64,000 nucleotides of DNA, taken from positions 160,748 to 224,747 of IMG/VR virus record IMGVR_UViG_3300015261_000002; one strand, given 5' to 3'. Under the pieces are notes generated by a model, which was given only the letters and a program-made list of their open reading frames with translations, made no database searches and was not told the DNA's origin. Positions 3,277 to 51,969 of this stretch are shown one piece after another (positions within the stretch are counted from its first letter, which is position 1; each line of letters starts with the position of its first letter). Both the position numbers and the translations under genes were made by a program.

Positions 3277-4703
3277 TACTCCTTCTTAGCTTTTTCGTCA
3301 GGTTTGTCAGCAGCTTCGTTGGGGAAGATCTTGCTGTTGATACCGGCAGCGGCTTTGCGGATCCCACTGACCAGTTTCTTGTGAGCAGTAACCTTTTCCT
3401 TAAGCCCCTTGAGACTGTCTTTGGCAGCAGCGATCTTTTCCTGGGTCGACTTCCGGGTGGTGGCAACAACTTCCTTGTTGGCCTCGTCTTTACCCGAAAC
3501 ATTACTGGCTGCGGTTTTCAGCTCAGCAAGTTTCTGTTGAGCAAGGTTCATCGCCTCACCGAGTGCAGCACCGTAACCGCTCTGCTTGTTCAGCAGACCC
3601 AACAGCTTGTCGAGTGCAGTGGCTGCATCTGCCTTACTGTTAAGACCGCCTACGATGGCACTGAATGCACCAGAAGGATCGGATTCAGCCGCCAGCTTAA
3701 CCAGGCCTGCTTTAGCCACCGAGTTGATTTGATCACCCGTAGTCGCCTTGGCAGCAGCCAGGTCTTTCTTGTTGGCCTCAGCTGCATCAACCGTGGCTTT
3801 ATTCGTATCCTTTTCATCGGACGAAGTGAACCACTCCTTAATAGCTTTGAAAGACTCTGAGATCGTTTCCCAGGCCTTTGTAGCCATTTCCTTGATACCA
3901 TCCAGGATTGCGCCTTCAGTACCCTCTACAGCGCTCATACGAGCGTTGCGCGCACTGGCTACGCCAATGAGGTAGTTCGACGCAAAGGTGTTCTGGCCGT
4001 TCAGGTAATCTTCCATACCCTGGAGGAGTTGCAGCGGGTGATCGAACTTGCAACCGCAGTCACAATCATCGTTCCGTTGGCAGTCTTCCGGTTCGTCGAA
4101 ATCAACCACCGGGGCTTCTGGCAGATCTTCCAACTGGGAAGGGGCAAACTCTTCTGCACCCATTACCATACCGAGACGGCTGGTCACAAACACATCGACG
4201 ATGTTCAGCACCCGTTCCGCGTACTCCATTTGGCGGATGTTTGCGTTCATGCATTCGATGTTTGGTTGTTCATGGCCTTCGTAGATCTCCATGAAGTAGC
4301 GAAGACCTTTGTGAGCGAACTCGATCCAGTCATTGACGGCGGCACCGCTCAGGTGGTCAGAGTTCTTGTTACCGAGCGCGCAGACCTGCATGGCCACATT
4401 ACGCTCTGGATTACGACCGCCATTCTGGAGGTCAGCCAGCAGTTCGCCGAGGTATTGATTGACGAGGGTATTGACAAGCAACTCACTCGCATCGTAATAC
4501 GCCAGGCGGCTTTCAATAGCGGACACAATGGAGCACATCCGCTCTTTGACACGGTCGGTATCCGTCGCTTCACCCTCGAACACATAATCGAGTCCGATGG
4601 AGCGCAGGAGGTCAACCATCACCGGGTTATTCTCGGCGGTCAGTTTACCAGCTCTGCCGGTCAGCATGAGGCCAACCAACCCCAATTCAAAGTACAAATT
4701 CAT
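3276..4703 (-). CDS. Internal head (inner body/ejection) protein paralog
   Basis: Start MNLYFELG follows a GAGGAG RBS. Acidic propeptide, AVEGTE-G protease-type site, then an amphipathic helix and an Ala/Lys-rich helical body. Confidence 0.6.
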   Translation of the reverse strand: MNLYFELGLVGLMLTGRAGKLTAENNPVMVDLLRSIGLDYVFEGEATDTDRVKERMCSIVSAIESRLAYYDASELLVNTLVNQYLGELLADLQNGGRNPERNVAMQVCALGNKNSDHLSGAAVNDWIEFAHKGLRYFMEIYEGHEQPNIECMNANIRQMEYAERVLNIVDVFVTSRLGMVMGAEEFAPSQLEDLPEAPVVDFDEPEDCQRNDDCDCGCKFDHPLQLLQGMEDYLNGQNTFASNYLIGVASARNARMSAVEGTEGAILDGIKEMATKAWETISESFKAIKEWFTSSDEKDTNKATVDAAEANKKDLAAAKATTGDQINSVAKAGLVKLAAESDPSGAFSAIVGGLNSKADAATALDKLLGLLNKQSGYGAALGEAMNLAQQKLAELKTAASNVSGKDEANKEVVATTRKSTQEKIAAAKDSLKGLKEKVTAHKKLVSGIRKAAAGINSKIFPNEAADKPDEKAKKE

Positions 4704-4713
4704 TCCCTTCTCC

Positions 4714-16648: not shown

Positions 16649-17407
16649 TTATTCCGCAGGCTGTTCCATCGGAGTCCCTGGGTACTTCAGGTTCAGGTAT
16701 TCCGCAAACATGAACGGCAGCTTCAACTTGTTGCACATGTCGCTCGTGCGCCAAGAGAAGTCCTTCAGACTGTAACCCGTCAACTTCAGGTCAGGCTTGA
16801 AGGTACCTTCCAGATAGCTGGAGTGCGCCTTAGCCATGATGTCCTTGAACTCGTTAACAAAGAGGTAGTCCCCGTTGATGACGATATCCGGAACACGGTT
16901 GAGTTGATCCCACGAGGTGAGCGAACCGTCTTTCAACTTCTGCTCAGCTTCGTAGAAGTAGTCGCCGGTGTACGCGGTGTATTTCAACACCTCGCAACGG
17001 AACTCGTTCAGACGTTCCTGGCTCTCCACCGTGAAGTCAGCTGCGAGCAGCTCTTTCATTGTGGTGTTGACGACCTGGTCGATGTAGGCGTAAATGACCT
17101 CGAAGTACTCGCGGGTTTCTTTCAGCTCGCCCAGTTGCTTGCGTGCTTCTTCAACGGGCAGGCCTGCATACAGCACAACAGACTTGTTCGTTTCAGGAAA
17201 GCATTCGGACAACTGAACAATCAGCGAGTTAGCCCGAGAGCTACTACCCCAGATACCGCGGATGATCTTTGTAGCGACCGGCAGTGGAAGACCTTCGTCT
17301 TCCATCGCGGTGATCAGGGATTCGAGTTCGTCGATGTACGTCTGAGTCGTGACATCAGCCACACCCTTCAGTTTGACGATCTCTTCCCACATGGCTGCTC
17401 GGCTCAT
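16649..17407 (-). CDS. Hypothetical protein (252 aa)
   Basis: ATGA-coupled to the upstream gene. Confidence 0.55.
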   Translation of the reverse strand: MSRAAMWEEIVKLKGVADVTTQTYIDELESLITAMEDEGLPLPVATKIIRGIWGSSSRANSLIVQLSECFPETNKSVVLYAGLPVEEARKQLGELKETREYFEVIYAYIDQVVNTTMKELLAADFTVESQERLNEFRCEVLKYTAYTGDYFYEAEQKLKDGSLTSWDQLNRVPDIVINGDYLFVNEFKDIMAKAHSSYLEGTFKPDLKLTGYSLKDFSWRTSDMCNKLKLPFMFAEYLNLKYPGTPMEQPAE

Positions 17408-24524: not shown

Positions 24525-24595
24525 GGAAAGGGCCCTTTCGTAGAGAGTTATAGGCTACCGTAAATACGGTTTCAGCATAAAATACGCCTCCACCC

Positions 24596-24617
24596 CTAGG
24601 GTCCGCTGGGACCCTAG
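24596..24617 (-). terminator. Hairpin terminator
   Basis: ctagggtcc-gctg-ggaccctag, extendable by cgcctc/gaggcg; followed by TATTTTATGCTG on the minus strand. Confidence 0.55.
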
Positions 24618-24630
24618 AGGCGAAAGGTAT

Positions 24631-25167
24631 CTAAAACAGTTTCTTGTCCAAACCCAGCTGTCGCATAACTTCCAGCACGTCTTTGTTGGTATCCCCAACC
24701 TTTGGCATTTTGGTATTACCATTTGACTCAGGTGGGTTATCCTGCTTGTCCCGCTGACTACGTCCTTCACCCACACCCGTGATCAAGTCATCGATCATAA
24801 ACATGGGCATTTCCATGTAATCCCTTAACGGCATGATCTCATGGAGTTTGTAGAACCCATACTTCTTAGCGACAGACTTAATTGACCACTCATGGTAGAA
24901 CTCGTTCTCCTCAGGAATGTAGAGAACCGAAGAGAACGGATCCATGGTGGCAGGGGTGTAGTAGTTCATGTTCAAGTCATGCAACATGGACTCGTTAAAC
25001 GACATCGCCTCTGGGGTAACATCCTTCATGGACTTACCCAGAAGCGAATTGTTTACCTGGTTGAACGCGGGACTGAAGACAATCCGATTGTTGACGCGCT
25101 CTATTATTGCGAGAGGGCTTCGGATTTGACTTTGTTTTGGACGGCCGTCTGCTTGAGCATTGACCAC
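24631..25167 (-). CDS. ORF in the -1 frame of the upstream gene; probable frameshift extension (tail-chaperone T-like or gp51-like domain)
   Basis: Overlaps the upstream gene by 64 nt with no convincing RBS at its GTG. The frame is open from the T7 run at 25179-25185. Confidence 0.5.
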   Translation of the reverse strand: MVNAQADGRPKQSQIRSPLAIIERVNNRIVFSPAFNQVNNSLLGKSMKDVTPEAMSFNESMLHDLNMNYYTPATMDPFSSVLYIPEENEFYHEWSIKSVAKKYGFYKLHEIMPLRDYMEMPMFMIDDLITGVGEGRSQRDKQDNPPESNGNTKMPKVGDTNKDVLEVMRQLGLDKKLF

Positions 25168-26831
25168 TGGGTGAGGGTAAAAAAACTCATCACCGGATCG
25201 ATAGGCGTGTAGCCCAGCTTACGATCCAGGAGGTTTTCGGGGTCTTCCAGGTCGGCCATGTTCTTGCGGCACTTCGGACACACGTAGTTACGCACACCAA
25301 AGAAGGTACGCGACATGTACGGGGTCTTGTTCAGCACGAACTTGACGAGGTTACGGTTGAGGTCTTCGTGGTCACGCAGTACATCGAGAAGACCGCCGTT
25401 GAAGTCGTTCGGTTCGATTTCGCTGCGGTTGAACACCGTTTCCTTTTCGTCGGTGTTTTCTGCCGGCAGGTCGACCTGACGTTGCACCCAGTGGATGAAC
25501 TCGGTAGAACCGAGGTTGTTGTGAACCATCGTCACCTGAGTTTGGTATTCGGCCGGATCGATCAACTTCGTACGCAGCTCAGCCAACTCAGGGTTGATCT
25601 CGCCGATAAAGAAGTCGAACGCGTCGAAGGCTTCAGCCAGGGTAGGCGGTGCACATTCCAGGTACATCGTTCTGTCGTCGTTGTACACGCGGTTGCTTTC
25701 GAGACCGTAGGTCGAAGCACGGCTCATGGCACGCGTTTCTTCCATGGTGTACTTCGCATGGCCGTTCAGCAGGTTGGCGTAGATCGCCTCATCAGCATCG
25801 CTGGTGATGTGGTGACGATGACGCAGCAGCTTGCTTGCCTGCACCAACTTGAAGGCTTCCCAATCACAGCTGCCGGAGAAGCAACGGAGGTTGAGGTTGA
25901 TACCCTTGGCGTTGGTGGACTCGATGAGCGCACTGATGATGGCATCCATGTCGGTCAGCAGGATCACGTTGGACAGCTGATTGAAGTCAGCCAGGTCAGT
26001 AACGCTGGAGTTCGTGATACGCTTCGCGATGAAGTTCCAGATCACACGGATCGATGCAATGCGAGCCAGGACGGCGCTGTTGTTGCCGATCTGCTGTACA
26101 TAGCCGGTGATGGTCCGGCGGATGTCGTTCAGCAGCGAGCCCATCTCGGTGTGGTTAGTCCGCGAGAAAGCGAACATCGCAAACGAGTCACGGCAGAGAA
26201 CGTCGAAGGCCAGCTTGTCGGCACCGGGTGCTGTGGTTTTACGCGCAGCACGACGACGCATGTTTTCACGAGCCGAGAAGCCTTCGGTCTGAGCAGAAGG
26301 ACGTTTACCGACGACGTCACCGGTGTTTACACCGCCACGGTTGGCGACGTTGCTGAGACCCGGCTCATTCATGATCGAGGTACGAACTTTCAGCTCGTCC
26401 TGGATCTCCGACATGAACGCATACATGTCGGCAGCGTGTGCCATGACCTGGTCAGAGGTCTTGCCCGGGAACTTCTCTTCGATGTACGCCATCCAGTCCG
26501 CTTCAGCCTTCTTGAAGACCGACTCAGGGATGCGCTCTTCCTCGTACATGGCCTTGGAGCCACTGAAGGTCAACCAACGGCCAATGACGCTCTGGGCCTT
26601 CTGGATGTCTTCCTTGCGGTTACCGAGGAACACAGTGAGGAAACCACCGTCTTGACGTTCTTCTTCGGAGAGGTCGCGGAGGACTTCATCTTCAGGAGCC
26701 AGGACTTGCTTCATCGTGGTGTTTTGAGCGGTGTGTACGTCGTGGTGCGTTGGAGTTGATGCAGTCGGTGCAGGAGTTGCATCAGCACCTTGAACAGACG
26801 TCTCAACCGGATCTTGAGGTTCAGTACTCAT
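25104..26831 (-). CDS. Putative tail/baseplate assembly chaperone (T4 gp26/gp51-like, inferred)
   Basis: 575 aa with Cys pairs LRCFSGSC and YVCPKC; strong codon bias. Function is inferred. Confidence 0.4.
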   Translation of the reverse strand: MSTEPQDPVETSVQGADATPAPTASTPTHHDVHTAQNTTMKQVLAPEDEVLRDLSEEERQDGGFLTVFLGNRKEDIQKAQSVIGRWLTFSGSKAMYEEERIPESVFKKAEADWMAYIEEKFPGKTSDQVMAHAADMYAFMSEIQDELKVRTSIMNEPGLSNVANRGGVNTGDVVGKRPSAQTEGFSARENMRRRAARKTTAPGADKLAFDVLCRDSFAMFAFSRTNHTEMGSLLNDIRRTITGYVQQIGNNSAVLARIASIRVIWNFIAKRITNSSVTDLADFNQLSNVILLTDMDAIISALIESTNAKGINLNLRCFSGSCDWEAFKLVQASKLLRHRHHITSDADEAIYANLLNGHAKYTMEETRAMSRASTYGLESNRVYNDDRTMYLECAPPTLAEAFDAFDFFIGEINPELAELRTKLIDPAEYQTQVTMVHNNLGSTEFIHWVQRQVDLPAENTDEKETVFNRSEIEPNDFNGGLLDVLRDHEDLNRNLVKFVLNKTPYMSRTFFGVRNYVCPKCRKNMADLEDPENLLDRKLGYTPIDPVMSFFTLTQWSMLKQTAVQNKVKSEALSQ

Positions 26832-26854: not shown

Positions 26855-27634
26855 TTAGTTAACTTGTTTGGCGCCAATGTCTTCATAGGCGTCTTCAGGC
26901 AACACGGTGCCTTCCAGCGGCTTGCTGGCTGCCGGTGCGGCGGAAGGCGAGACAGTGCGGTAGGTCGCAGCAACGATGGCCATACGCTCACCGTGCAGAC
27001 GCATGCCGAAGGTGTAGTTGTCTTCGTCCTGGCCTTTGTGTTCGCGGACGTATTCGTTGATGATTTCTTCGCGAGGACGCAGCACACCTTCCATAACGGA
27101 CGGGATGTCGAATTCCATCACTTCGGCGAGGGTGTCGGTGTAGTGGACGAACAGTGAGATGTAATCGTCGACTTCCTGGCCTTTGTTGATGAACTCGAAG
27201 ATGGCATGAACGTCTTCGGCGATCGAGACGATCTTCTGATCGAAGAGGTTGATGAGCAGTTGCTCTTCTGCGGTCAGGGTGGTCTTCTTCATGTCAACGA
27301 GTTTGCTGACAACTTCGATCACGCCGTGGATGTTGCCCAGGATCGGGATCATTTCGTTGATGCCTTTCAGCACCTCGATGTTGTTCAGCGCTTCCTTCGC
27401 CTTGTCGAAATCCTTCCGCAGGTCGAGGGCGGTTTGCATCACGCCCTTGGTGGCGATGTCGTAACGCAGTTTGGCTTCGGCCGCCTGGATGCCTTCAGGG
27501 GTCTTGGCGATACGTGCCATCTCACGACGGCCAAGATGGAATTGTGTGGTGTTACGGTCAACGTTAGCCCGTTTCTTTTTCTGTTTCGAGGCCTGGTTGC
27601 GTTTGGCTTTCTTTTCTGCTTGCTTGGTGCTCAT
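26855..27634 (-). CDS. Hypothetical protein (259 aa)
   Basis: Basic N-terminus, helical body, strong codon bias. Confidence 0.55.
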   Translation of the reverse strand: MSTKQAEKKAKRNQASKQKKKRANVDRNTTQFHLGRREMARIAKTPEGIQAAEAKLRYDIATKGVMQTALDLRKDFDKAKEALNNIEVLKGINEMIPILGNIHGVIEVVSKLVDMKKTTLTAEEQLLINLFDQKIVSIAEDVHAIFEFINKGQEVDDYISLFVHYTDTLAEVMEFDIPSVMEGVLRPREEIINEYVREHKGQDEDNYTFGMRLHGERMAIVAATYRTVSPSAAPAASKPLEGTVLPEDAYEDIGAKQVN

Positions 27635-31332: not shown

Positions 31333-33669
31333 TTAATTGAGCGAGCAGTTAGATTCAATAAGCTTAAAGTCCTTTTCCTTGTTGGCAAAGGCGATACGGC
31401 GTTTCTGGAAACACTCCTGATGTTTACCCAAGTCATTACAGAACGGGAAGACAAACGTTGGCGTAATACGACCGTTGAAGTGAGCGAACTTACCTCGGAA
31501 CTGTCGCAGTCGTCCGATCATCTGTTTGTTCCGCTGAGTCGAGAAGACCGTGTGGAAACAAATGGTCGTAACCAGTCCTGGAATGTCCTTACCCGTACCG
31601 CAACTACCTGGGGTGGTAATAACGATCTCGTGTTCCAGATACTTCGTGGGGGTCTTCTTATCTTTCGTACCGAGGAAGGTACAGAAGTCCAAGTCGGGAT
31701 AAACCTTCTGGAACATCGCCAACATGGTTTCGCACATCTCGATACGCGAGAAGAAGAACAGACACTTGGTACCCTCCTCTCGAGTCGGCGGGATAAAGTT
31801 GTAATCACCCGGCACACCCACCCCGTAGTAATACTCGTCGAACGCCTTTTTAGCGATCTTGAAGTAGAACTCGGTTAAGACAGGACTACGAAGTATGGAC
31901 GCCTCCAACGCCATATCGTTGTAGCTACCGAACTGCATCGTCTTAAGGAAGAACTTCCGCTGACACAAGTGATACATGTAAGCGACGATGTTGATGTAGT
32001 TCTCCGGCTCAGGCTCCTTAAGTCGGATACTGATAGGGAGCATCAGGTTATACATCTTGTTCATGAACGGATCGTCAGCCTTGAGCGTGGCTGTCAGCGT
32101 GACCATCTTCTTGTGGTTGCCGTGGAACATAGACAACGCAACTTCGTGGAACGATTCATGACCCTCGTCCACAATCCGATAGCCCGCATTGATCTGTTCA
32201 AAGATCTTGCTAAGCGACACCGCATGTGGATCCTTGCGGTTGTTACGCAGGTACAGCGAGATCCTGGAGAACGGCACGATAACGATCTTGGGATTGAGCA
32301 ACCCCTTCTCGATGTTCTCGCCGAGTAACGGCAGCGAAGCGTTTTCCCACACAATCACATCGCCTGGTTTGGTGATCAACGTTTTCTCGATGTCATTGAC
32401 CCAGGTGGTGATGTAACGCGGTTGCACCGTGATGAGCACTCGTTTACCCAGCTGTACGGCCGTGTAGAGTCCCATGTAGGTGTTGTGGGTAACGATGTAG
32501 TCCTTTACCACGAAACAGTGGCTAGGGTGCTCTACAGCGATGCACGTTGTCTCGGTAGGTTCCGTCTCAACGATCTGCAAGATCTTTAACGCAAGGTCCC
32601 GATTCTCGGAGTTACGCAGCTTGTCCTGTTTCACCTCATCGGTAAAAAGGATCTCCGGGGTACGGTGGCGAAGGATAACCGAGTTCTTGAACTTCTTGAA
32701 CTTGGCCTCAGCAATACCACCAATGCTCCTGACCAGGTCACGAACCATTTTGGCTGTGATCCCATACTCGGTCTTGAAGACGATCGAACCATCTAGCTGC
32801 GGTTCACCCCCGTTGTCAAGCAACCCTCGCAGTAACGCCATTCGCTGTGAGTGAGAACCCTCCAGGTACTTTTCGCCAAGGATGCGGTCGGTCTTACCGA
32901 TAAGGTAAGGTTCGATGATATCCCCACGATCAGGATTGCGCTCACTGGCAGTCAGGGGAATGTACCAGGTCTTGCCACTGTCCACCATTTGTTGCGTAGT
33001 CAGCACCTGCCATTCAGTCTCACCCTTAGCGCGAACCTCCCACTGGTGATCAGGGCACGCCACAATCACCCTGCCGTCTTCAAACTGCAAACGGTAGGCA
33101 CGGGTCATCCCTTGAGGGAAAACGCCTGTAACGTACGTATGGGAACCGTCAGGGGCCATTACAAGGTCATTAACCTTGATCTGCCCAATAGGTCTCCACC
33201 CGTGGATGGTTCTGACCGGTGTATCGTTAGCCAGAGCCTTACCACCACCTGTAGGGGCGTTGTTAACCTTTACCCCGCCGTCAGCCAGCTGATAATCCAG
33301 CCACTCCACTTGATGGTCTAATGGGGTTGACATTTCAGGCCTGAGTTGGAATTCGCAATCAGCGCCTTCAATCTCAGGTTCTGTTTCAATTGCAATCCGG
33401 GCAGTGTTGTAACCCCGGTATTGTGCGAACTCAATGAATTCCTTCATTAAGGTTGCGGGAATTCGATACTCAGTTTTGTCGTGGTTAGACTGAGCAAACA
33501 CGTGAGTCACTTTCCAAGCCTGTTTGTTTGTACCAGGCACCGGAACCTTGCCAACCTTGTACAGATGAGCACGGCAGAAAGGAATGATAACCCTTGCACA
33601 GAAATCGCCGTAATACCCAAAGATACGTAGGTAGGTGTGACCCATGGATATAGTGGCGGAATGCCTCAT
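31333..33669 (-). CDS. SF2 DEAD/DExH-like helicase (UvsW-like, phiKZ gp75-like), intein-containing; ~526 aa after splicing
   Basis: Walker A APTGGGK|T is split by the intein; Walker B IVDEGHE, motif III TATL, GKDIPGL, motif VI QMIGRLR. Confidence 0.85.
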   Translation of the reverse strand: MRHSATISMGHTYLRIFGYYGDFCARVIIPFCRAHLYKVGKVPVPGTNKQAWKVTHVFAQSNHDKTEYRIPATLMKEFIEFAQYRGYNTARIAIETEPEIEGADCEFQLRPEMSTPLDHQVEWLDYQLADGGVKVNNAPTGGGKALANDTPVRTIHGWRPIGQIKVNDLVMAPDGSHTYVTGVFPQGMTRAYRLQFEDGRVIVACPDHQWEVRAKGETEWQVLTTQQMVDSGKTWYIPLTASERNPDRGDIIEPYLIGKTDRILGEKYLEGSHSQRMALLRGLLDNGGEPQLDGSIVFKTEYGITAKMVRDLVRSIGGIAEAKFKKFKNSVILRHRTPEILFTDEVKQDKLRNSENRDLALKILQIVETEPTETTCIAVEHPSHCFVVKDYIVTHNTYMGLYTAVQLGKRVLITVQPRYITTWVNDIEKTLITKPGDVIVWENASLPLLGENIEKGLLNPKIVIVPFSRISLYLRNNRKDPHAVSLSKIFEQINAGYRIVDEGHESFHEVALSMFHGNHKKMVTLTATLKADDPFMNKMYNLMLPISIRLKEPEPENYINIVAYMYHLCQRKFFLKTMQFGSYNDMALEASILRSPVLTEFYFKIAKKAFDEYYYGVGVPGDYNFIPPTREEGTKCLFFFSRIEMCETMLAMFQKVYPDLDFCTFLGTKDKKTPTKYLEHEIVITTPGSCGTGKDIPGLVTTICFHTVFSTQRNKQMIGRLRQFRGKFAHFNGRITPTFVFPFCNDLGKHQECFQKRRIAFANKEKDFKLIESNCSLN
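32482..33237 (-). mobile_element. Intein (252 aa, Ala1, class-3 type) with a degenerate LAGLIDADG endonuclease remnant
   Basis: Starts ALANDTPVRT after GK and ends YIVTHN before Thr. Block B CPDHQW, block F TTCIAV, endonuclease remnant LLRGLLDNGG. Confidence 0.85.
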
Positions 33670-45904: not shown

Positions 45905-46711
45905 TTAGCACTCCAGCGGGTCGGTAGGACGTGGCCGTTGGCTGACGACATTACCTTTACCCGAAGCAGCTGCGGCCATATTGACGCCCTTGATGGATTC
46001 CTCATTGAACTGGAATTCCATGTTGCCGGTCATCAGGCGATTAACCTGAGCGACTTGTTCGGCAGTGATCGGCTCTTTGCGATAGTTTGCATAGAGGATA
46101 GGACGGATGGCGTTGATCTCTTCGATCGGACGTTTGTTGTTGTTCAACGTGTCCTTGATGTAAACCACCTGCTTCTCTACTTCCGGGATCACGCCGAACT
46201 TGGCATAGAACTCAGGCGCGATCATTTCAGTGAGGGTGGTACGTTTCTTGCTGTCCAGTGCCTTGGTCAACGCCTTGGCCAAACCGAGGTTGGCGTTCGG
46301 GTCGTTCTTCTTCATGGTGTCAGCACTGTGACTGTGAATCATCCGGCTAGCCTGTTCCAGCATCTGGTACTCACGCTGGGTCAGGTTTGTGGTGATCATC
46401 GGCGGAATGAGCAGCACTGGCTTGTGGTCTTCGTCGACGACCATTACCGCACGAGTGCCGTTACCGCTGATCGACATCCACTTGTTGACCTTGGCGCCGA
46501 AGTAGTTCAGGCCATGATCGTTACCGAGGGCAAACGCCATCAGCCATTCGCGGACGAAGTCCTTTTCGTAGAGCACGGTTTCGACGTTGAAAGGCAGATC
46601 ACCATCACCCATCATCAACTTGCCGTCGATGTTTTGTACTTTGACGTTTTCAAGAAAGGCAAAATCTTCCTTGAGAATCTCTTCGCGGTCCTGCTTTGTC
46701 ATCTGACTCAT
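45905..46711 (-). CDS. Conserved hypothetical protein (268 aa)
   Basis: Coupled ORF in the core block. Confidence 0.55.
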   Translation of the reverse strand: MSQMTKQDREEILKEDFAFLENVKVQNIDGKLMMGDGDLPFNVETVLYEKDFVREWLMAFALGNDHGLNYFGAKVNKWMSISGNGTRAVMVVDEDHKPVLLIPPMITTNLTQREYQMLEQASRMIHSHSADTMKKNDPNANLGLAKALTKALDSKKRTTLTEMIAPEFYAKFGVIPEVEKQVVYIKDTLNNNKRPIEEINAIRPILYANYRKEPITAEQVAQVNRLMTGNMEFQFNEESIKGVNMAAAASGKGNVVSQRPRPTDPLEC

Positions 46712-47115
46712 TTACCCAACCTCGCCTTATCCAACACTTCATAAAGTCTGCCTGTTACAAGTACCACTTCAGACAGGTCATAAGTTTCGCCATCCACAAT
46801 TGCCCGAGCGGACATCAAGAGATGGTAGTTGTTAACTTCGTTATCTACCGTTTTCTTTTGCACCAACACTTGAGCCTGCGGAAACAGTTCTCGCATGTAG
46901 GATTCGAATTCTTGTTGAGTTCGTTCAACCATGGTCTCAGGCGTCGTACCATGGGTTGCCCAGAGAAAATAAAAACTAGGCACCTCACCAATGACCTTAC
47001 CCTGGTCACGACGGGAGGTAAACCAGTACATGAAATGCAGCGCCATCGCCTCCTGAGGCGACTTAACCTCGAAGCCTGAACGGGTAGACATCGTGGCCAC
47101 GCAAAAAGTGTTCAT
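46708..47115 (-). CDS. Small protein, possibly gp25-like baseplate/sheath initiator
   Basis: Helix-loop-helix-helix-three-strand pattern compatible with the T4 gp25 fold (weak inference). Confidence 0.35.
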   Translation of the reverse strand: MNTFCVATMSTRSGFEVKSPQEAMALHFMYWFTSRRDQGKVIGEVPSFYFLWATHGTTPETMVERTQQEFESYMRELFPQAQVLVQKKTVDNEVNNYHLLMSARAIVDGETYDLSEVVLVTGRLYEVLDKARLGK

Positions 47116-47192
47116 ACCGTTTTCCTTTATAGAAGTAACCTCTATAAGAATAGTTTTCCTTGCAACGCTGTAAGATAGCGTATGGCAAAAAA

Positions 47193-47226
47193 ATAAAGCA
47201 GGAAGGGTGTTACCCCTCCTGTTTAT
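47193..47226 (-). terminator. Intrinsic terminator
   Basis: Imperfect hairpin followed by a T7 run on the minus strand. Confidence 0.55.
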
Positions 47227-47236
47227 CTAAACGGTC

Positions 47237-47878
47237 TTATTCGGCTTCTGGGGGCGGTGTAGCGCCTTTCAGAGCCTTGTTGGTCTCGCTGGTGATATCG
47301 AACAAGTTCTTCGTCCGATGATAACCAATTGCGTTCCACGTTTTCTGCACGTCAACGCGTTCACGGAAGGACAATCCACCGCCTGCACTTTCCAGGTAGT
47401 GAGCATGTTTCAACCGTGTGACGTCGTCTTTCGTTTCCAGGTGCAACAAGCCATTCATCGAACGGCGCCAGAAAATGTTCTCAGCGCCAATCCCTGTATT
47501 GAGTGGACTGAAGTTGCCGTCATATCCACTGATCTTGTCATCCAGCCAATCCTGGTGCAAGCCTTCATGCGCCATGATGTAGTCGCGCATGAAACCCTGC
47601 GCACCTTGCAGACCTGCCACGGAACCCAGGTAACCGATTTCGAACCGACCGACGTAATCGCCGTCCGAGTTACCCAACAGTCGCTTACCCATTTCCCATG
47701 CTCGCGAGGTCAGGTAGTTGTTGAACCCTTCCAACGCGTTTGTTGCTTGTTGTGCTAACCAACCACCCGCCTGCTGAAACGCCTGAGTGGAGTTGTTCAC
47801 ATACTGGGCGTACTTCTGCATCTGATTCTCGGTGTAGCTGCCCGAGACCGCATAACTGAATGCATGAGCACTGTTCAT
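47237..47878 (-). CDS. Conserved core hypothetical protein (213 aa) downstream of nvRNAP beta-prime N
   Basis: GAGG RBS and clear coding pattern. Confidence 0.55.
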   Translation of the reverse strand: MNSAHAFSYAVSGSYTENQMQKYAQYVNNSTQAFQQAGGWLAQQATNALEGFNNYLTSRAWEMGKRLLGNSDGDYVGRFEIGYLGSVAGLQGAQGFMRDYIMAHEGLHQDWLDDKISGYDGNFSPLNTGIGAENIFWRRSMNGLLHLETKDDVTRLKHAHYLESAGGGLSFRERVDVQKTWNAIGYHRTKNLFDITSETNKALKGATPPPEAE

Positions 47879-49641: not shown

Positions 49642-51663
49642 TTACATGAACGGCATGTTCATGTTGTACGCCAGGCCCAGGCCGTTGCCGTTGGCATTGT
49701 TCGAGCCAGCACCCACGAGGGTAGCCAGACCGATGCCAGGCGTCGAAGCCAGGCTGGTGTTGCGCCAGCTGCCCAGGTTGTTCGCGACGTTCAGCTGACC
49801 GATGGTGTCCATGGCTTTCGACATGGCAGCCATGAAGTCAGGCGCCCAGATGTGAGGCTGAGCCCAGCCGTTGATGTGAACCTGACCGTCGAACAGCGAC
49901 GAACCGGTTTCCACGCGCAGCTTCTGAGCACGTTGCTTGAACTCTTCGCCCTGGATGGTACCGTACATGGTCGACAGCAGGCTTTCGGCTGCGAGTTGAC
50001 CTTTCGGGCCCTTGATGTGCGAGATCATCATCTCGTCCAGTTCCTGGGTGTTGAACTTGCGACCGGCGTATTCGGCCAGGCCGTTTACCGCGATCATGCC
50101 AGTCGGGATCAGCACTGGCTTGGAAGGCGTCCAACCTTGTTGCGAGGTGACGTTCTGGCGGATGATTTCCGAGAACGCGCCCTTGGTCATGCTGTCGATG
50201 AGCGAGATCACCACCTTGATTTCTGCCGCGTTCTGGCCTTGCTTGGCCAGCTGGAAGAAGAAGTTGTTGATCGAAGCGTTCGGACCGGCCGGGATCAGGT
50301 TGATCTGGAAGGTTGCATGCGGGGAAACGTTCTGACGGATCCAGTTGTTGACCAGCTCGGTGTCCGACATCTTCTTCTCGTCGAGACGGATACGTTGCGG
50401 GTTCTGGAAGCCACCAGGGATCTGGCTTACCATTTGGTCAACACGGACTTCCAGGTCGGCCAGGTTACCGCGAGCACCCACGCTGTGACGGCGCAGAGCT
50501 TCGGACCAGACGTACTGGTTGTTCGTCGCCATCAGCGCGTACAGGCCGGTGAAGAACGGGAACAGACCGCCGTTGTTGCAGAGTTGCTCGCCGGCTTGAA
50601 CGGTGCCGACGGTGATCACTGGACGCAGAGGTTTGAAGCCCTGTGGGTAAACACCCATGCCCATTTGGTTGCCCAGGAACTGTTGCAGCGCGTTCATCTG
50701 CTCTTGCGAGCGGTGCGACATCATGAAACGCTGGTGATCTTCCCACGACACGCCGTTCAGGCTGACAGCGGCGGTAGCACGGATGATCTCTTTCGAGTTG
50801 GCCTGGAAGTTGCCGGTGTTCTGGTTGTTGTTGTTGATCGTCGAAACGATCACTTCCATGTTGTCGGCGGTCAGGGTGCCGGCCTTGCTGGTGCGGAAGC
50901 TGATAGCGCTCACACGAGCTTCGGCGCAGCCGTCTTTGCCGTACGGTTGATCAGGAGTTGCGAACGGTGCCGGAACCTGATAGCCCTTGGCAACGATTTC
51001 GCGAACGGTTTTGACCATGATCGCTTCTTCCCACTCGGAGGCGATGTAGTTCGCCTGACGGTGAGCGTAGTCTTTCGGATCGCCGGCTTCCTGATGGTTC
51101 AGGAGTTCCAGGTCGACCACGATCATGTTGATGACGCTGACGTTCTTCACGCCTTGTGCTTCGGCGACCTTGGTGTAGTGACCGGTCAGCTTTTCCAGGA
51201 ACTGGCTGTTCGGGTACTGGGCCGGGGTCAGCGGCGCCGACATTTGCTGCATGATGTTGTTGGCGTTGACGGTGATGCGCTCGACGCCGATGCTCAGGGT
51301 GCGGTTGTAGAACAGCGCGGCCATCACGTACATGGTGCCGTCGAAGATGACGTACAGACCGACGCCCGGCAGTTGAGCCGAGATGGACGGGGTCAGGCTT
51401 TCGACGGTCGGAACGATTTTGCGTTGCAGTTCGTTGGTGGTGGACTTCTTGGCGTTCTCGTAGATCGCCTCGAGTTTCTCGATGGTTTCAGCAACCTCTT
51501 TCAGGTTGCGGTTATCCGACGTCATGGACGGCAGACGAAGCAGGCCGGCGAGACCATCCAGCGGAGCCATGGTGCCCGGAGCGCCTGGAGCCTGGCTTGC
51601 GTTGGTAGGCTTTTCGTTGTCGTTCCAGGAGGTGCTTTCGGAAGAACCGGTGTTCAGTGTCAT
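49642..51663 (-). CDS. chmA: Chimallin, major phage nuclear shell protein (~673 aa)
   Basis: Start MTLNTG after AAGGA. Size, extreme codon bias, position immediately upstream of nvRNAP beta-prime N, disordered N-terminus and aromatic/hydrophobic C-terminal tail. Confidence 0.85.
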   Translation of the reverse strand: MTLNTGSSESTSWNDNEKPTNASQAPGAPGTMAPLDGLAGLLRLPSMTSDNRNLKEVAETIEKLEAIYENAKKSTTNELQRKIVPTVESLTPSISAQLPGVGLYVIFDGTMYVMAALFYNRTLSIGVERITVNANNIMQQMSAPLTPAQYPNSQFLEKLTGHYTKVAEAQGVKNVSVINMIVVDLELLNHQEAGDPKDYAHRQANYIASEWEEAIMVKTVREIVAKGYQVPAPFATPDQPYGKDGCAEARVSAISFRTSKAGTLTADNMEVIVSTINNNNQNTGNFQANSKEIIRATAAVSLNGVSWEDHQRFMMSHRSQEQMNALQQFLGNQMGMGVYPQGFKPLRPVITVGTVQAGEQLCNNGGLFPFFTGLYALMATNNQYVWSEALRRHSVGARGNLADLEVRVDQMVSQIPGGFQNPQRIRLDEKKMSDTELVNNWIRQNVSPHATFQINLIPAGPNASINNFFFQLAKQGQNAAEIKVVISLIDSMTKGAFSEIIRQNVTSQQGWTPSKPVLIPTGMIAVNGLAEYAGRKFNTQELDEMMISHIKGPKGQLAAESLLSTMYGTIQGEEFKQRAQKLRVETGSSLFDGQVHINGWAQPHIWAPDFMAAMSKAMDTIGQLNVANNLGSWRNTSLASTPGIGLATLVGAGSNNANGNGLGLAYNMNMPFM

Positions 51664-51748
51664 GAGTGTTTTCCTTTTATACGAAGATAGTCTGCTATAG
51701 CGACGTTGTTTTAACAAATGTGGAACATTTGTACTACCAACTACATGA

Positions 51749-51776
51749 GTAATATAGTCTTGAAAATTTCTTACCC
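51749..51776 (-). promoter_or_regulatory. Early promoter of chimallin
   Basis: GGGTAAGAAATTTTCAAGACTATATTAC contains TATATTAC, the reported phiKZ early-promoter core. Confidence 0.65.
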
Positions 51777-51969
51777 CAGCAGAAACCATCCCGCTTTTCA
51801 GCAGGGATGATATAGAGTAGTCGCTTTCAAAGCTGTATTACAAATTCTCAAATTGCGCAATGGTCCCCAGTAGGAGATCTTCTCCTGATGTGACTTGTTC
51901 ACATAAGATAGAGAATTCCAGTGAGACTTTATTTTAAACATCCCTCCCCATTTTTCTCGGACAGCCATT

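Follow-up and report, generated by a model that had tools for sequence, protein, structure and literature searches.

A conserved, probable programmed -1 frameshift site in a core gene of phiKZ-like giant phages

In long-tailed phages, the tail assembly chaperones are made as two nested products through a conserved -1 frameshift. In lambda gpG/gpGT and P2 gpE/gpE+E', a -1 slip on a heptamer near the 3' end of the upstream ORF produces a major short form and a minor, C-terminally extended form that share the N-terminal part. This arrangement is retained across very divergent phages and is not known to have been resolved into a simple fusion. In P2 the slip occurs on a T run, T TTT TTG. Classical X XXY YYZ tandem-slippage heptamers are also found in E. 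coli dnaX, in IS3/IS911 OrfAB, and in HIV-1 gag-pol, which uses U UUU UUA; these sites normally have a downstream hairpin or pseudoknot and/or an upstream Shine-Dalgarno-like stimulator. U_UU.U_UU.C is used by IS elements, H_HH.U_UU.Y is a high-efficiency class in E. coli, and U_UU.U_UU.Y is in the class of most efficient -1 heptamers in that species, shifting measurably without stimulators, while UUUUUUU is otherwise avoided in genes (PMC4066793). A different route to two nested products is seen in T4 gene 26, which encodes a baseplate hub assembly chaperone (gp26/gp51 family, Pfam PF12322) and makes 26 and 26', the second from an internal non-AUG start.

In the present study, a stretch of 64,000 nucleotides (the window; positions 160,748 to 224,747 of IMG/VR record IMGVR_UViG_3300015261_000002) was analysed at a locus where a first-pass annotation, made from the sequence alone, had proposed a -1 frameshift on T TTT TTT fusing a 575-aa gene to a 182-aa extension, and had inferred a hidden G/GT-type chaperone lying away from the tube and tape-measure genes of a nucleus-forming jumbo phage. 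The features of the locus, all on the minus strand, are as follows.

25104..26831 (-), the 0-frame gene, 575 aa; orthologue of phiKZ gp77, EL gp47, 201phi2-1 gp136, Goslar gp081 and RAY gp267, chimallivirus core gene cg18 (PHROG 4585), annotated as a hypothetical protein.
25179..25185 (-), slippery heptamer T TTT TTT (X XXY YYZ) in 0-frame phase, being the last base of S549 plus F550 and F551.
25104..25178 (-), dual-coding overlap; in the 0 frame the last 24 residues, most of the C-terminal helix 546-574 of the predicted structure, and in the -1 frame YPHP plus a Gly/Ser/Arg-rich linker.
24631..25185 (-), -1-frame reading from the slip site to its TAG stop, 184 codons, of which 182 are new residues after F551; residues ~28-184 form a conserved, mainly helical extension domain (PHROG 19747).
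25165..25167 (-), GTG, the only canonical start codon upstream of the conserved -1-frame sequence; without an RBS and present only in close relatives.
25027..25029 (-), ATG that a gene caller would choose, 52 codons inside conserved -1-frame coding sequence.
25269..25280 (-), CPKC (C518, C521), which together with C317 (25881-25883) and C322 (25866-25868) forms a family-wide four-Cys set, a probable structural zinc site; these columns are invariant or >=90% conserved in an 84-sequence alignment.
24587..24626 (-), terminator-like 18-pair hairpin followed by CGTATTTTAT, starting 5 nt after the -1 ORF stop.

The observation in the first-pass annotation was confirmed, with one small correction. 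Codons 549-551 of the gene read AGT TTT TTT, and 24 sense codons follow F551 before the TAA at 25106..25104. After a -1 slip the reading is TAC CCT CAC CCA GTG GTC AAT, which is the frame of ORF 25167..24631, and the fusion would be 551 + 182 = 733 aa, with the predicted junction ...MSFFYPHPVVNAQADGR (in phiKZ, ...STFFYFGGLEVKPDGVVNDLR). The -1 frame is open for only 11 codons upstream of the run, rather than the approximately 13 previously given. The GTG at 25167 is preceded by tttaccctcaccca, in which there is no Shine-Dalgarno-like purine run. This is more than would be expected by chance, as the run is the only T7/A7 run inside coding sequence in the window; the only other one, at 47187, is the T-tract of an intrinsic terminator.

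Orthology of the gene rests on synteny and the C-terminal motif, on a note in the 201phi2-1 record, and on Table S3 of PMC10299810. Due to the RNA polymerase neighbourhood, identity with PicA/Imp1 (phiKZ gp69) was considered, however BLASTP found no similarity and synteny points to gp77 instead. No close DNA relatives were found in the phage collection by megablast.

Conservation of the heptamer in the same -1 relation in phiKZ, 201phi2-1, and their relatives had been set beforehand as the test of the frameshift, and it was found. All 45 distinct orthologous junctions examined carry an in-phase T TTT TTN at the homologous Phe-Phe (or Phe-Leu): TTTTTTT in 36, TTTTTTC in six, TTTTTTA in two, and TTTTTTG in one. 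These junctions range from 100 % identity down to relatives found only by a sequence-profile search and cover the clade of the window, RisingSun, EL, FishSpeaker, Miami, phiKZ, 201phi2-1, Goslar, SPN3US, PCH45, RSF1, Xoo-sp14, Bacillus phage AgentSmith, Halocynthia phage, and eight metagenomic relatives picked from the distant end of the profile-search list. The preceding codon varies (AGT, GCT, AAT, ACT, GGT, GTT, CTT, TAT, TCT), but always ends in T. Elsewhere in these genes Phe is encoded by TTC 517 times and by TTT 99 times, a preference of 84 % for TTC, yet the slip-site codons are TTT TTT, or TTT followed by TTC, TTA, or TTG. One of the two peptide patterns used to fetch the IMG/VR loci contained the FF motif, a protein-level ascertainment bias, although this does not affect the nucleotide-level result or the 21 loci fetched in other ways. 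The conserved FF is itself partly explained by protein-level constraint, since T4 gp26 also has it. In T4 gp26, which served as a negative control with the same Cys pattern and a C-terminal FF, the motif is encoded as TTC TTT and there is no -1 extension; although T4 gene 25 is in the -1 frame relative to gene 26, a frameshift between the two was rejected on the basis of this TTC TTT.

The geometry of the site is likewise maintained. In the 45 junctions the 0-frame stop follows 10-53 codons later, the -1 ORF is always 144-189 codons, and the -1 frame is open only 0-38 codons upstream of the run (median 11). From the T run to the 0-frame stop the -1 frame is open in 45 of 45 junctions, although shuffling the 0-frame codons keeps it open only ~53 % of the time per locus. 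Among close relatives, variable sites fall on 0-frame third positions upstream of the run (27 of 37), show no codon-position bias in the overlap (6, 3, 6), and fall on -1-frame third positions after the 0-frame stop and before ATG 25029 (18 of 34). The -1-frame domains of the two deep groups are homologous (hhalign 95.9 %, E 6e-9), including those of phiKZ, SPN3US, PCH45, AgentSmith, and others. None of the 150 listed family representatives has a fused long form; the longest tail after the FF motif is ~50 aa.

No stimulatory RNA structure is conserved, in agreement with the first-pass annotation, which had noted no strong downstream hairpin. RNAalifold finds 0 conserved pairs, the fold z-score of the window site is -1.1, and for 35 sites the mean z-score is -0.18 with none below -2. 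No conserved purine motif or Shine-Dalgarno-like element was seen upstream. In this respect the site differs from dnaX, IS3/IS911, and HIV-1 gag-pol, although the T TTT TTA variant in AgentSmith and in the junction labelled L053 is the HIV-1 heptamer, and the P2 heptamer T TTT TTG occurs in junction L049.

The best explanation is probably a programmed -1 ribosomal frameshift, and the frameshift part of the earlier interpretation is strongly supported. In this view, most ribosomes translating cg18 read straight through to make a 575-aa protein ending in a 29-residue helix, while a minority slip back one base while two tRNA-Phe molecules sit on U UUU UUU and continue in the -1 frame to 24631, making a ~733-aa isoform. 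In this isoform the C-terminal helix would be cut off after its first turn by Tyr-Pro-x-Pro and replaced by a ~25-residue disordered linker and a ~155-residue helical domain. Since the heptamer appears to act without a conserved downstream RNA structure, the long form is probably the minor product. The analysis demonstrates the site, its phase-exact conservation, coding constraint in the -1 frame, the absence of independent start codons in several lineages, and homology of both protein parts across phiKZ-like phages. The evidence is entirely comparative, however, and the trans-frame protein, the ribosomal rather than transcriptional mechanism, the ratio of the two isoforms, and the function, including any binding to the tape-measure protein or role in tail assembly, are inferred.

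Programmed transcriptional slippage, in which the phage or host RNA polymerase occasionally adds one extra U while copying the A7 template tract, would give exactly the same 733-aa protein and remains a rival, although an unlikely one. The run is a homopolymer of 6 T in four junctions, 7 in 36, and 8 in five, a length conservation that would also suit polymerase slippage, and in junctions where the phase differs (for example CTT TTT TTC in Xoo-sp14, SPN3US, Phobos, and L047, or GTT TTT TTA in AgentSmith) the run is usually still 7. The lack of a conserved ribosomal stimulator is also consistent with this, and the avoidance of A7 and U7 in E. coli genes is partly attributed to transcriptional slippage (PMC4066793). 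Middle and late genes of these phages are transcribed by an unusual phage multisubunit RNA polymerase of uncharacterised slippage behaviour. However, the constant feature is the codon phase NNT TTT TTN, with Z being T, C, A, or G, rather than the run length, which fits tandem tRNA slippage. Four junctions have only T6 (Yong XC32 TAT TTT TTC, L049 AAT TTT TTG, L053 TCT TTT TTA, and L054 GGT TTT TTC), and no lineage has lengthened the run beyond 8. Established bacterial cases of programmed transcriptional slippage use runs of about 9, and T6 is poor for it.

It is very unlikely that these are two ordinary genes, with the downstream ORF translated from GTG 25167, ATG 25029, or a non-canonical codon, possibly by termination-reinitiation at the 0-frame stop. 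The window does have a GTG at +6 and an ATG at +52 in the -1 frame, all public annotations opened treat the two as separate genes, and T4 gene 26 provides a precedent for internal non-AUG initiation. However, the GTG is a by-product of the 0-frame CAG TGG and other lineages have GTT here. RisingSun, EL, phiKZ, and the lineages labelled L017, L019, and L020 have no ATG, GTG, or TTG for the first 56-75 codons of the conserved -1 sequence. Conserved coding extends upstream of every annotated ATG: tblastn homology begins at query residues 3-10, upstream of the Met at 25029, and about 90 nt upstream of the annotated ATGs of RisingSun gp54 and EL gp048. The open -1 frame in the overlap and the fixation of TTT TTT plus a preceding wobble T at the slip site, despite the preference for TTC, are also against this reading. 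A homopolymer sequencing error or recent frameshift mutation splitting a single 733-aa gene can be all but dismissed. Although homopolymer runs are error-prone in several sequencing chemistries, the same -1 offset is present in 45 independent sequences from many laboratories and sample types, including phiKZ, EL, 201phi2-1, and T4-era reference genomes, and junctions with T8 and T6 keep the same frame relation. The 0-frame tail is conserved in length and sequence (for example ...EALSE followed by the stop, 26 codons, in most of the group of the window) and is modelled as a confident helix packed on the protein (pLDDT 94-97).

The other part of the earlier interpretation, that this is a G/GT-type tail chaperone, is not established, so the interpretation as a whole is only partly supported. 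The proposed two-isoform logic is as in G/GT, but the upstream protein is 575 aa rather than ~100-150 aa, and the gene does not lie between tube and tape-measure genes; its neighbours are the virion RNA polymerase beta subunit, DNA polymerase, and hypothetical or head genes in the window, RisingSun, EL, phiKZ, SPN3US, and Goslar. Pfam and NCBIfam searches of both parts gave nothing, with no Pfam hit at E<=1 apart from noise and no tail-assembly-chaperone domain. AlphaFold2 predicts the 575-aa protein with confidence (pLDDT 92.5, pTM 0.90), however Foldseek of this model against the PDB gave no hit with E<1. Structural hits to tail assembly chaperones are weak: Foldseek prob <=0.21, and an ESM-Atlas row covering only 103 residues. 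The -1 part was modelled at a pLDDT of only 59.6 and was therefore left out of the fold searches. By sequence, single or as profiles of the family, no match to any solved structure in the PDB was found, including for phiKZ gp77 and its -1 ORF. Neither of these is flagged as a virion protein in the phiKZ or 201phi2-1 records, while neighbouring genes are.

Weak structural and language-model links are seen to the T4 gp26/gp51 chaperones. Foldseek on predicted viral structures (BFVD) gives, at ranks 19-25, ~250-aa 'baseplate hub assembly' proteins with prob 0.97-1.0, but E 5e-3 to 7e-2, target TM ~0.5, and query TM ~0.26, and 46 of the 100 nearest ESM-Atlas clusters carry PF12322, at scores <=0.89. 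Both proteins have two Cys pairs, the second, CPxC, close to a C-terminal FF: C317, C322, C518, C521, and F550-F551 here, and C82, C84, C187, C190, and the ending EFFELL in T4 gp26. The correspondence is uncertain, as the hhalign trace aligns the CPEC of gp26 with C317 rather than C518. Sequence homology was not demonstrated for the family. The window protein has no PF12322 hit, only one of 84 family members has one (1.2e-5), hhalign of the family against gp26 homologues gives a probability of 2.8 %, and the best hmmsearch E is 0.014 in a 217-sequence database; apart from the CPxC motif and the one member, nothing significant was found by hhalign, phmmer, or hmmsearch. The jumbo-phage protein is also two to three times larger, and the second product of T4 gene 26 comes from internal initiation rather than a frameshift. 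An assembly-chaperone role with G/GT-like logic is plausible but unproven. The best guess for function, which is tentative and rather less likely than not, is a non-virion assembly chaperone of the baseplate hub or tail, distantly related to T4 gp26/gp51 and working in two isoforms as lambda G/GT does.

More speculatively, and doubtful on present evidence, the frameshift product may be an essential, so far overlooked protein of every phiKZ-like phage, the jumbo-phage counterpart of gpGT, with a gp26/gp51-like hub chaperone made in a fixed short-to-long ratio and the extra domain of the long form coupling the hub or tape-measure to tube polymerisation. Alternatively, given the neighbourhood of virion RNA polymerase and head genes, the extra domain could do something unrelated to tails, such as loading injected proteins. 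It is also possible that the recoding is done by the phage's own multisubunit RNA polymerase, which would be a first case of programmed transcriptional slippage for that enzyme family.

Although -1 frameshifting of this type is known from other phages, this site is not annotated in the records opened. Literature searches on frameshifting in Chimalliviridae, phiKZ, or jumbo phages, on gp77, PHIKZ077, and SPN3US gp39, and of the phiKZ atlas, Goslar structure, core-genome, and Tn-seq papers found no mention of it or of a function for cg18. phiKZ, Goslar, 201phi2-1, EL, and SPN3US are the model systems for nucleus-forming and giant phages, their core genes are being worked through one at a time, and cg18 is one of those still labelled hypothetical. 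The results point to cg18 encoding two proteins rather than one, to the 90-220-nt 'intergenic gaps' downstream of it being coding, and to the small downstream ORFs (phiKZ 076.4, EL gp048, RisingSun gp54, Goslar gp082, and others) being mis-annotated fragments of the long isoform, such that knock-outs, transposon insertions, or tags in either ORF will affect a shared product. On this reading, the site also extends the rule of a conserved frameshift in assembly genes to a phage group and protein family where it was not known, and offers a natural, apparently stimulator-free U7 site that would function in hosts from Pseudomonas to Bacillus. The terminator-like hairpin at 24587..24626 probably marks the end of the transcription unit, and phiKZ has an analogous hairpin after PHIKZ076.4.

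The genes of this locus lie on the minus strand, and the features on which the analysis rests are the following.

26831..25104, minus strand: the 575-aa (0-frame) ORF.
25185..25179, minus strand: the T7 run, within codons 549-551 (AGT TTT TTT) of the 575-aa ORF.
25167..24631, minus strand: the downstream ORF, in the -1 frame, beginning with GTG.
25111-25122, minus strand: the 12-nt motif CGAAGCCCTCTC, just before the 0-frame stop.
24626..24587, minus strand: a terminator-like 18-pair hairpin, starting 5 nt after the stop of the -1 ORF.

The T7 run is followed in the 0 frame by 24 sense codons and a TAA. Read one base back, the sequence continues TAC CCT CAC CCA GTG GTC AAT..., which is in the frame of the downstream ORF; this frame is open for only 11 codons upstream of the run, its GTG has no Shine-Dalgarno-like sequence, and a tandem slip would give a protein of 551 + 182 = 733 residues. 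Each element of what the first-pass annotation observed in the sequence is therefore correct. The run is also unusual for this DNA. The window (52 % G+C) has only two A7/T7 runs, and the other, at 47187-47193, is the minus-strand T-tract of a hairpin (47195-47225) forming an intrinsic terminator between the minus-strand genes 47878..47237 and 47115..46708.

Although the window has no close DNA relative among deposited phages, both ORFs have relatives at the protein level. The 575-aa protein (PHROG 4585) and the downstream ORF (PHROG 19747) are adjacent in RisingSun (gp53/gp54), EL (gp047/gp048), FishSpeaker, Miami, and many Vibrio and Aeromonas jumbo phages. The window itself carries chimallin (49642..51789), several split RNA-polymerase subunits, and a DNA polymerase, and is thus from a nucleus-forming phage. 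The phiKZ orthologue was initially suspected to be gp69/Imp1, however synteny and the C-terminal motif identify it as gp77; in phiKZ, gp78 is followed by gp77 and then by 076.4, transcribed divergently from gp79 and the gp80 virion RNA polymerase, with the DNA polymerase gp82 nearby. Likewise, the 201phi2-1 record describes gp136 as 'similar to phiKZ gp77 and EL gp47', and Table S3 of the chimallivirus core-genome paper lists phiKZ gp077, Goslar gp081, and RAY gp267 as core gene cg18, a 'hypothetical protein' that is not unique to chimallin-encoding phages (PMC10299810). A small gene of unknown function (window 26855-27634, minus strand, PHROG 28183; phiKZ gp78, 201phi2-1 gp137, Goslar gp080) always lies immediately upstream of cg18, often overlapping its start, and looks like a conserved partner in the same transcription unit.

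To compare the junction between the two ORFs, sequences were collected from 27 IMG/VR loci, four annotated phages, phiKZ, 12 very distant phages found with phiKZ gp77 (201phi2-1, Xoo-sp14, RSF1, SA002, AH06, PCH45, Bacillus phage AgentSmith, SPN3US, Eowyn, Phobos, Halocynthia phage, and Yong XC32), Goslar, and eight metagenomic representatives with 26-46 % G+C picked from the distant end of an exhaustive profile search. One of the two search patterns used for the IMG/VR loci contained the Phe-Phe motif, which biases the sample at the protein level only; 21 junctions were obtained independently of it. After removal of duplicates there are 45 distinct junctions, all 45 of which have the same anatomy. 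An in-phase T TTT TTN heptamer is present at the homologous Phe-Phe (or Phe-Leu), being TTTTTTT in 36, TTTTTTC in six, TTTTTTA in two, and TTTTTTG in one. A 0-frame stop follows 10-53 codons later, and the -1 frame is open from the heptamer for 144-189 codons, but for only 0-38 codons (median 11) upstream of it. The residue before the Phe pair varies (S, A, N, T, G, V, L, Y), however its codon always ends in T. Elsewhere in these genes Phe is encoded as TTC 517 times and as TTT 99 times.

T4 gp26 serves as a natural negative control. It ends ...CPECGKTHAHVIRGLKEFFELL, resembling the CPxC...FF end of the jumbo-phage family, and shares the Cys pattern; gene 25 starts in the -1 frame overlapping the gene 26 stop (3803-4429 of the T4 gene 26/25 sequence, L045). 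The FF is encoded as TTC TTT, however, so there is no slippery site and no extension. PCH45 (L038) and one metagenomic relative (L052) have unusually long overlaps of 46 and 53 codons, and both carry a second in-phase heptamer, G GGG GGC, inside the overlap, 34 and 41 codons before the 0-frame stop, respectively. This heptamer also leads into the same -1 ORF and could be a second slip site.

The downstream sequence is coding from the slip site and, in several lineages, cannot be reached by ordinary initiation. Homology of the downstream protein in tblastn searches starts about 90 nt upstream of the ATGs annotated in RisingSun and EL. In RisingSun, EL, three IMG/VR lineages, and phiKZ there is no ATG, GTG, or TTG in the first 56-75 codons of the -1 frame, although these codons align well. 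The GTG of the window, at codon +6, exists only in its close relatives and is a by-product of the 0-frame Gln-Trp codons. Among seven close relatives, the position of variable sites changes along the locus: upstream of the run they fall on 0-frame third positions (27 of 37), within the overlap they show no bias (6, 3, 6), and after the 0-frame stop, still upstream of ATG 25029, they fall on -1-frame third positions (18 of 34). When the 0-frame codons of the overlap were shuffled, the -1 frame remained open in only ~53 % of trials per locus, yet it is open in 45 of 45; as the loci are phylogenetically related, the product of these probabilities overstates the significance. The extension domains of the window's group and of the phiKZ/SPN3US/AgentSmith group are homologous (hhalign 95.9 %, E 6e-9), and none of the 150 listed family representatives has an in-frame long form. 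Within the overlap, the 12-nt motif is nearly invariant at the nucleotide level in the window's group, RisingSun, EL, and FishSpeaker, despite ~35 % protein identity, but is absent from the phiKZ-type group. It encodes E-A-L-S in the 0 frame and R-S-P-L in the -1 frame, and could reflect double protein constraint or an RNA signal.

With regard to mechanism, the constant feature is the X XXY YYZ phase rather than the length of the run. The T run is six in four junctions, seven in 36, and eight in five, and Z can be any base, which favours tandem tRNA slippage on the ribosome. In E. coli, U_UU.U_UU.Y belongs to the most efficient class of heptamers and shifts measurably without stimulators, and UUUUUUU is otherwise under-represented in genes (PMC4066793). 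No conserved stimulator was found: RNAalifold returned no pairs, the 126-nt region of the window has a fold z-score of -1.1, and across 35 sites the mean z is -0.18 with none below -2. A low, fixed frameshift rate is therefore inferred. Transcriptional slippage, with insertion of one U, would give the identical protein and cannot be excluded, since the run is seven in most lineages and the phage RNA polymerases are uncharacterised in this respect, however it is considered unlikely. All of the evidence is comparative; what it shows is the conservation of the site and the coding character of the -1 frame, whereas the ratio of the isoforms, the role of the extension, and the choice between ribosome and polymerase are inferred. 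The terminator-like hairpin after the -1 ORF stop has an analogous counterpart in phiKZ, therefore the long ORF probably ends the transcription unit.

Using an 84-sequence alignment, AlphaFold2 models the 575-aa form with pLDDT 92.5 and pTM 0.90. Residues C317, C322, C518, and C521 are (nearly) invariant and probably bind zinc, while F550-F551 are nearly invariant and lie in the first turns of the predicted C-terminal helix 546-574. In the long form this helix would be interrupted by Tyr-Pro-x-Pro, a motif invariant in the window's group and frequent elsewhere, followed by a Gly/Ser/Asp/Arg-rich stretch modelled as disordered and then by a predicted helical domain (pLDDT 59.6 overall). In one metagenomic relative (L050, -1 ORF from about 3000) a CxC...CxxC segment, a possible zinc ribbon, is inserted in this linker, showing that the linker tolerates insertions. 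The model of the 575-aa form has no match in the PDB (best E 1.8), and neither part matches any PDB chain by sequence or profile, including phiKZ gp77 and its extension. The phiKZ and 201phi2-1 records mark neighbouring genes, but not these, as virion proteins. All of this fits a non-structural role.

The only functional leads point to T4 gp26/gp51, which both belong to PF12322 and for which the current NCBI name is 'gp26 family baseplate hub assembly chaperone'. Foldseek against predicted viral structures first lists jumbo-phage orthologues and then ~250-aa 'baseplate hub assembly' proteins, with prob 0.97-1.0 but E 5e-3 to 7e-2. Of the 100 nearest ESM-Atlas clusters, 46 carry PF12322, one of 84 family members hits PF12322 at 1.2e-5, and three deposited genomes independently call the gene a baseplate or hub-assembly protein. 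Conversely, profile-profile and HMM comparisons with a gp26 alignment are not significant, and the window protein itself has no Pfam hit. An assembly chaperone of the baseplate hub or tail, made in two isoforms, is therefore proposed as the most likely function, but only tentatively, and not as a demonstrated membership. The first-pass annotation had interpreted the locus as a frameshift encoding a hidden G/GT-type chaperone, which is supported only in part: the comparative evidence strongly supports the frameshift, but G/GT membership fails on gene position, size, and fold, even though the expression logic is the same.

Programmed -1 frameshifts that give a C-terminally extended isoform are already known in phage genes. 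For cg18, no mention of a frameshift or of a function was found in literature searches and in the phiKZ structural atlas, Goslar structure, import-factor, core-genome, and Tn-seq papers, although this is not proof that the site is unreported. The site is of interest because it is in a core gene of intensively studied model phages, is conserved from Pseudomonas phages to a Bacillus phage, and can be checked at once in existing proteomic data. All of the public annotations opened list two separate genes with a gap or a truncated downstream ORF. The 'intergenic gaps' of 90-220 nt downstream of cg18 in these records are -1-frame coding sequence, and the annotated small ORFs look like truncated pieces of the long isoform. 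The gaps lie at the following positions of the collected locus sequences, each given with its annotated small ORF.

L032 (phiKZ), 16685-16946: PHIKZ076.4.
L001 (RisingSun), 4606-4709: RisingSun gp54.
L002 (EL), 4609-4703: EL gp048.
L037 (AH06), 2665-2867: AH06_283.
L039 (AgentSmith), 2626-2840: AgentSmith_12.
L046 (Goslar), 32497-32588: Goslar_00082.
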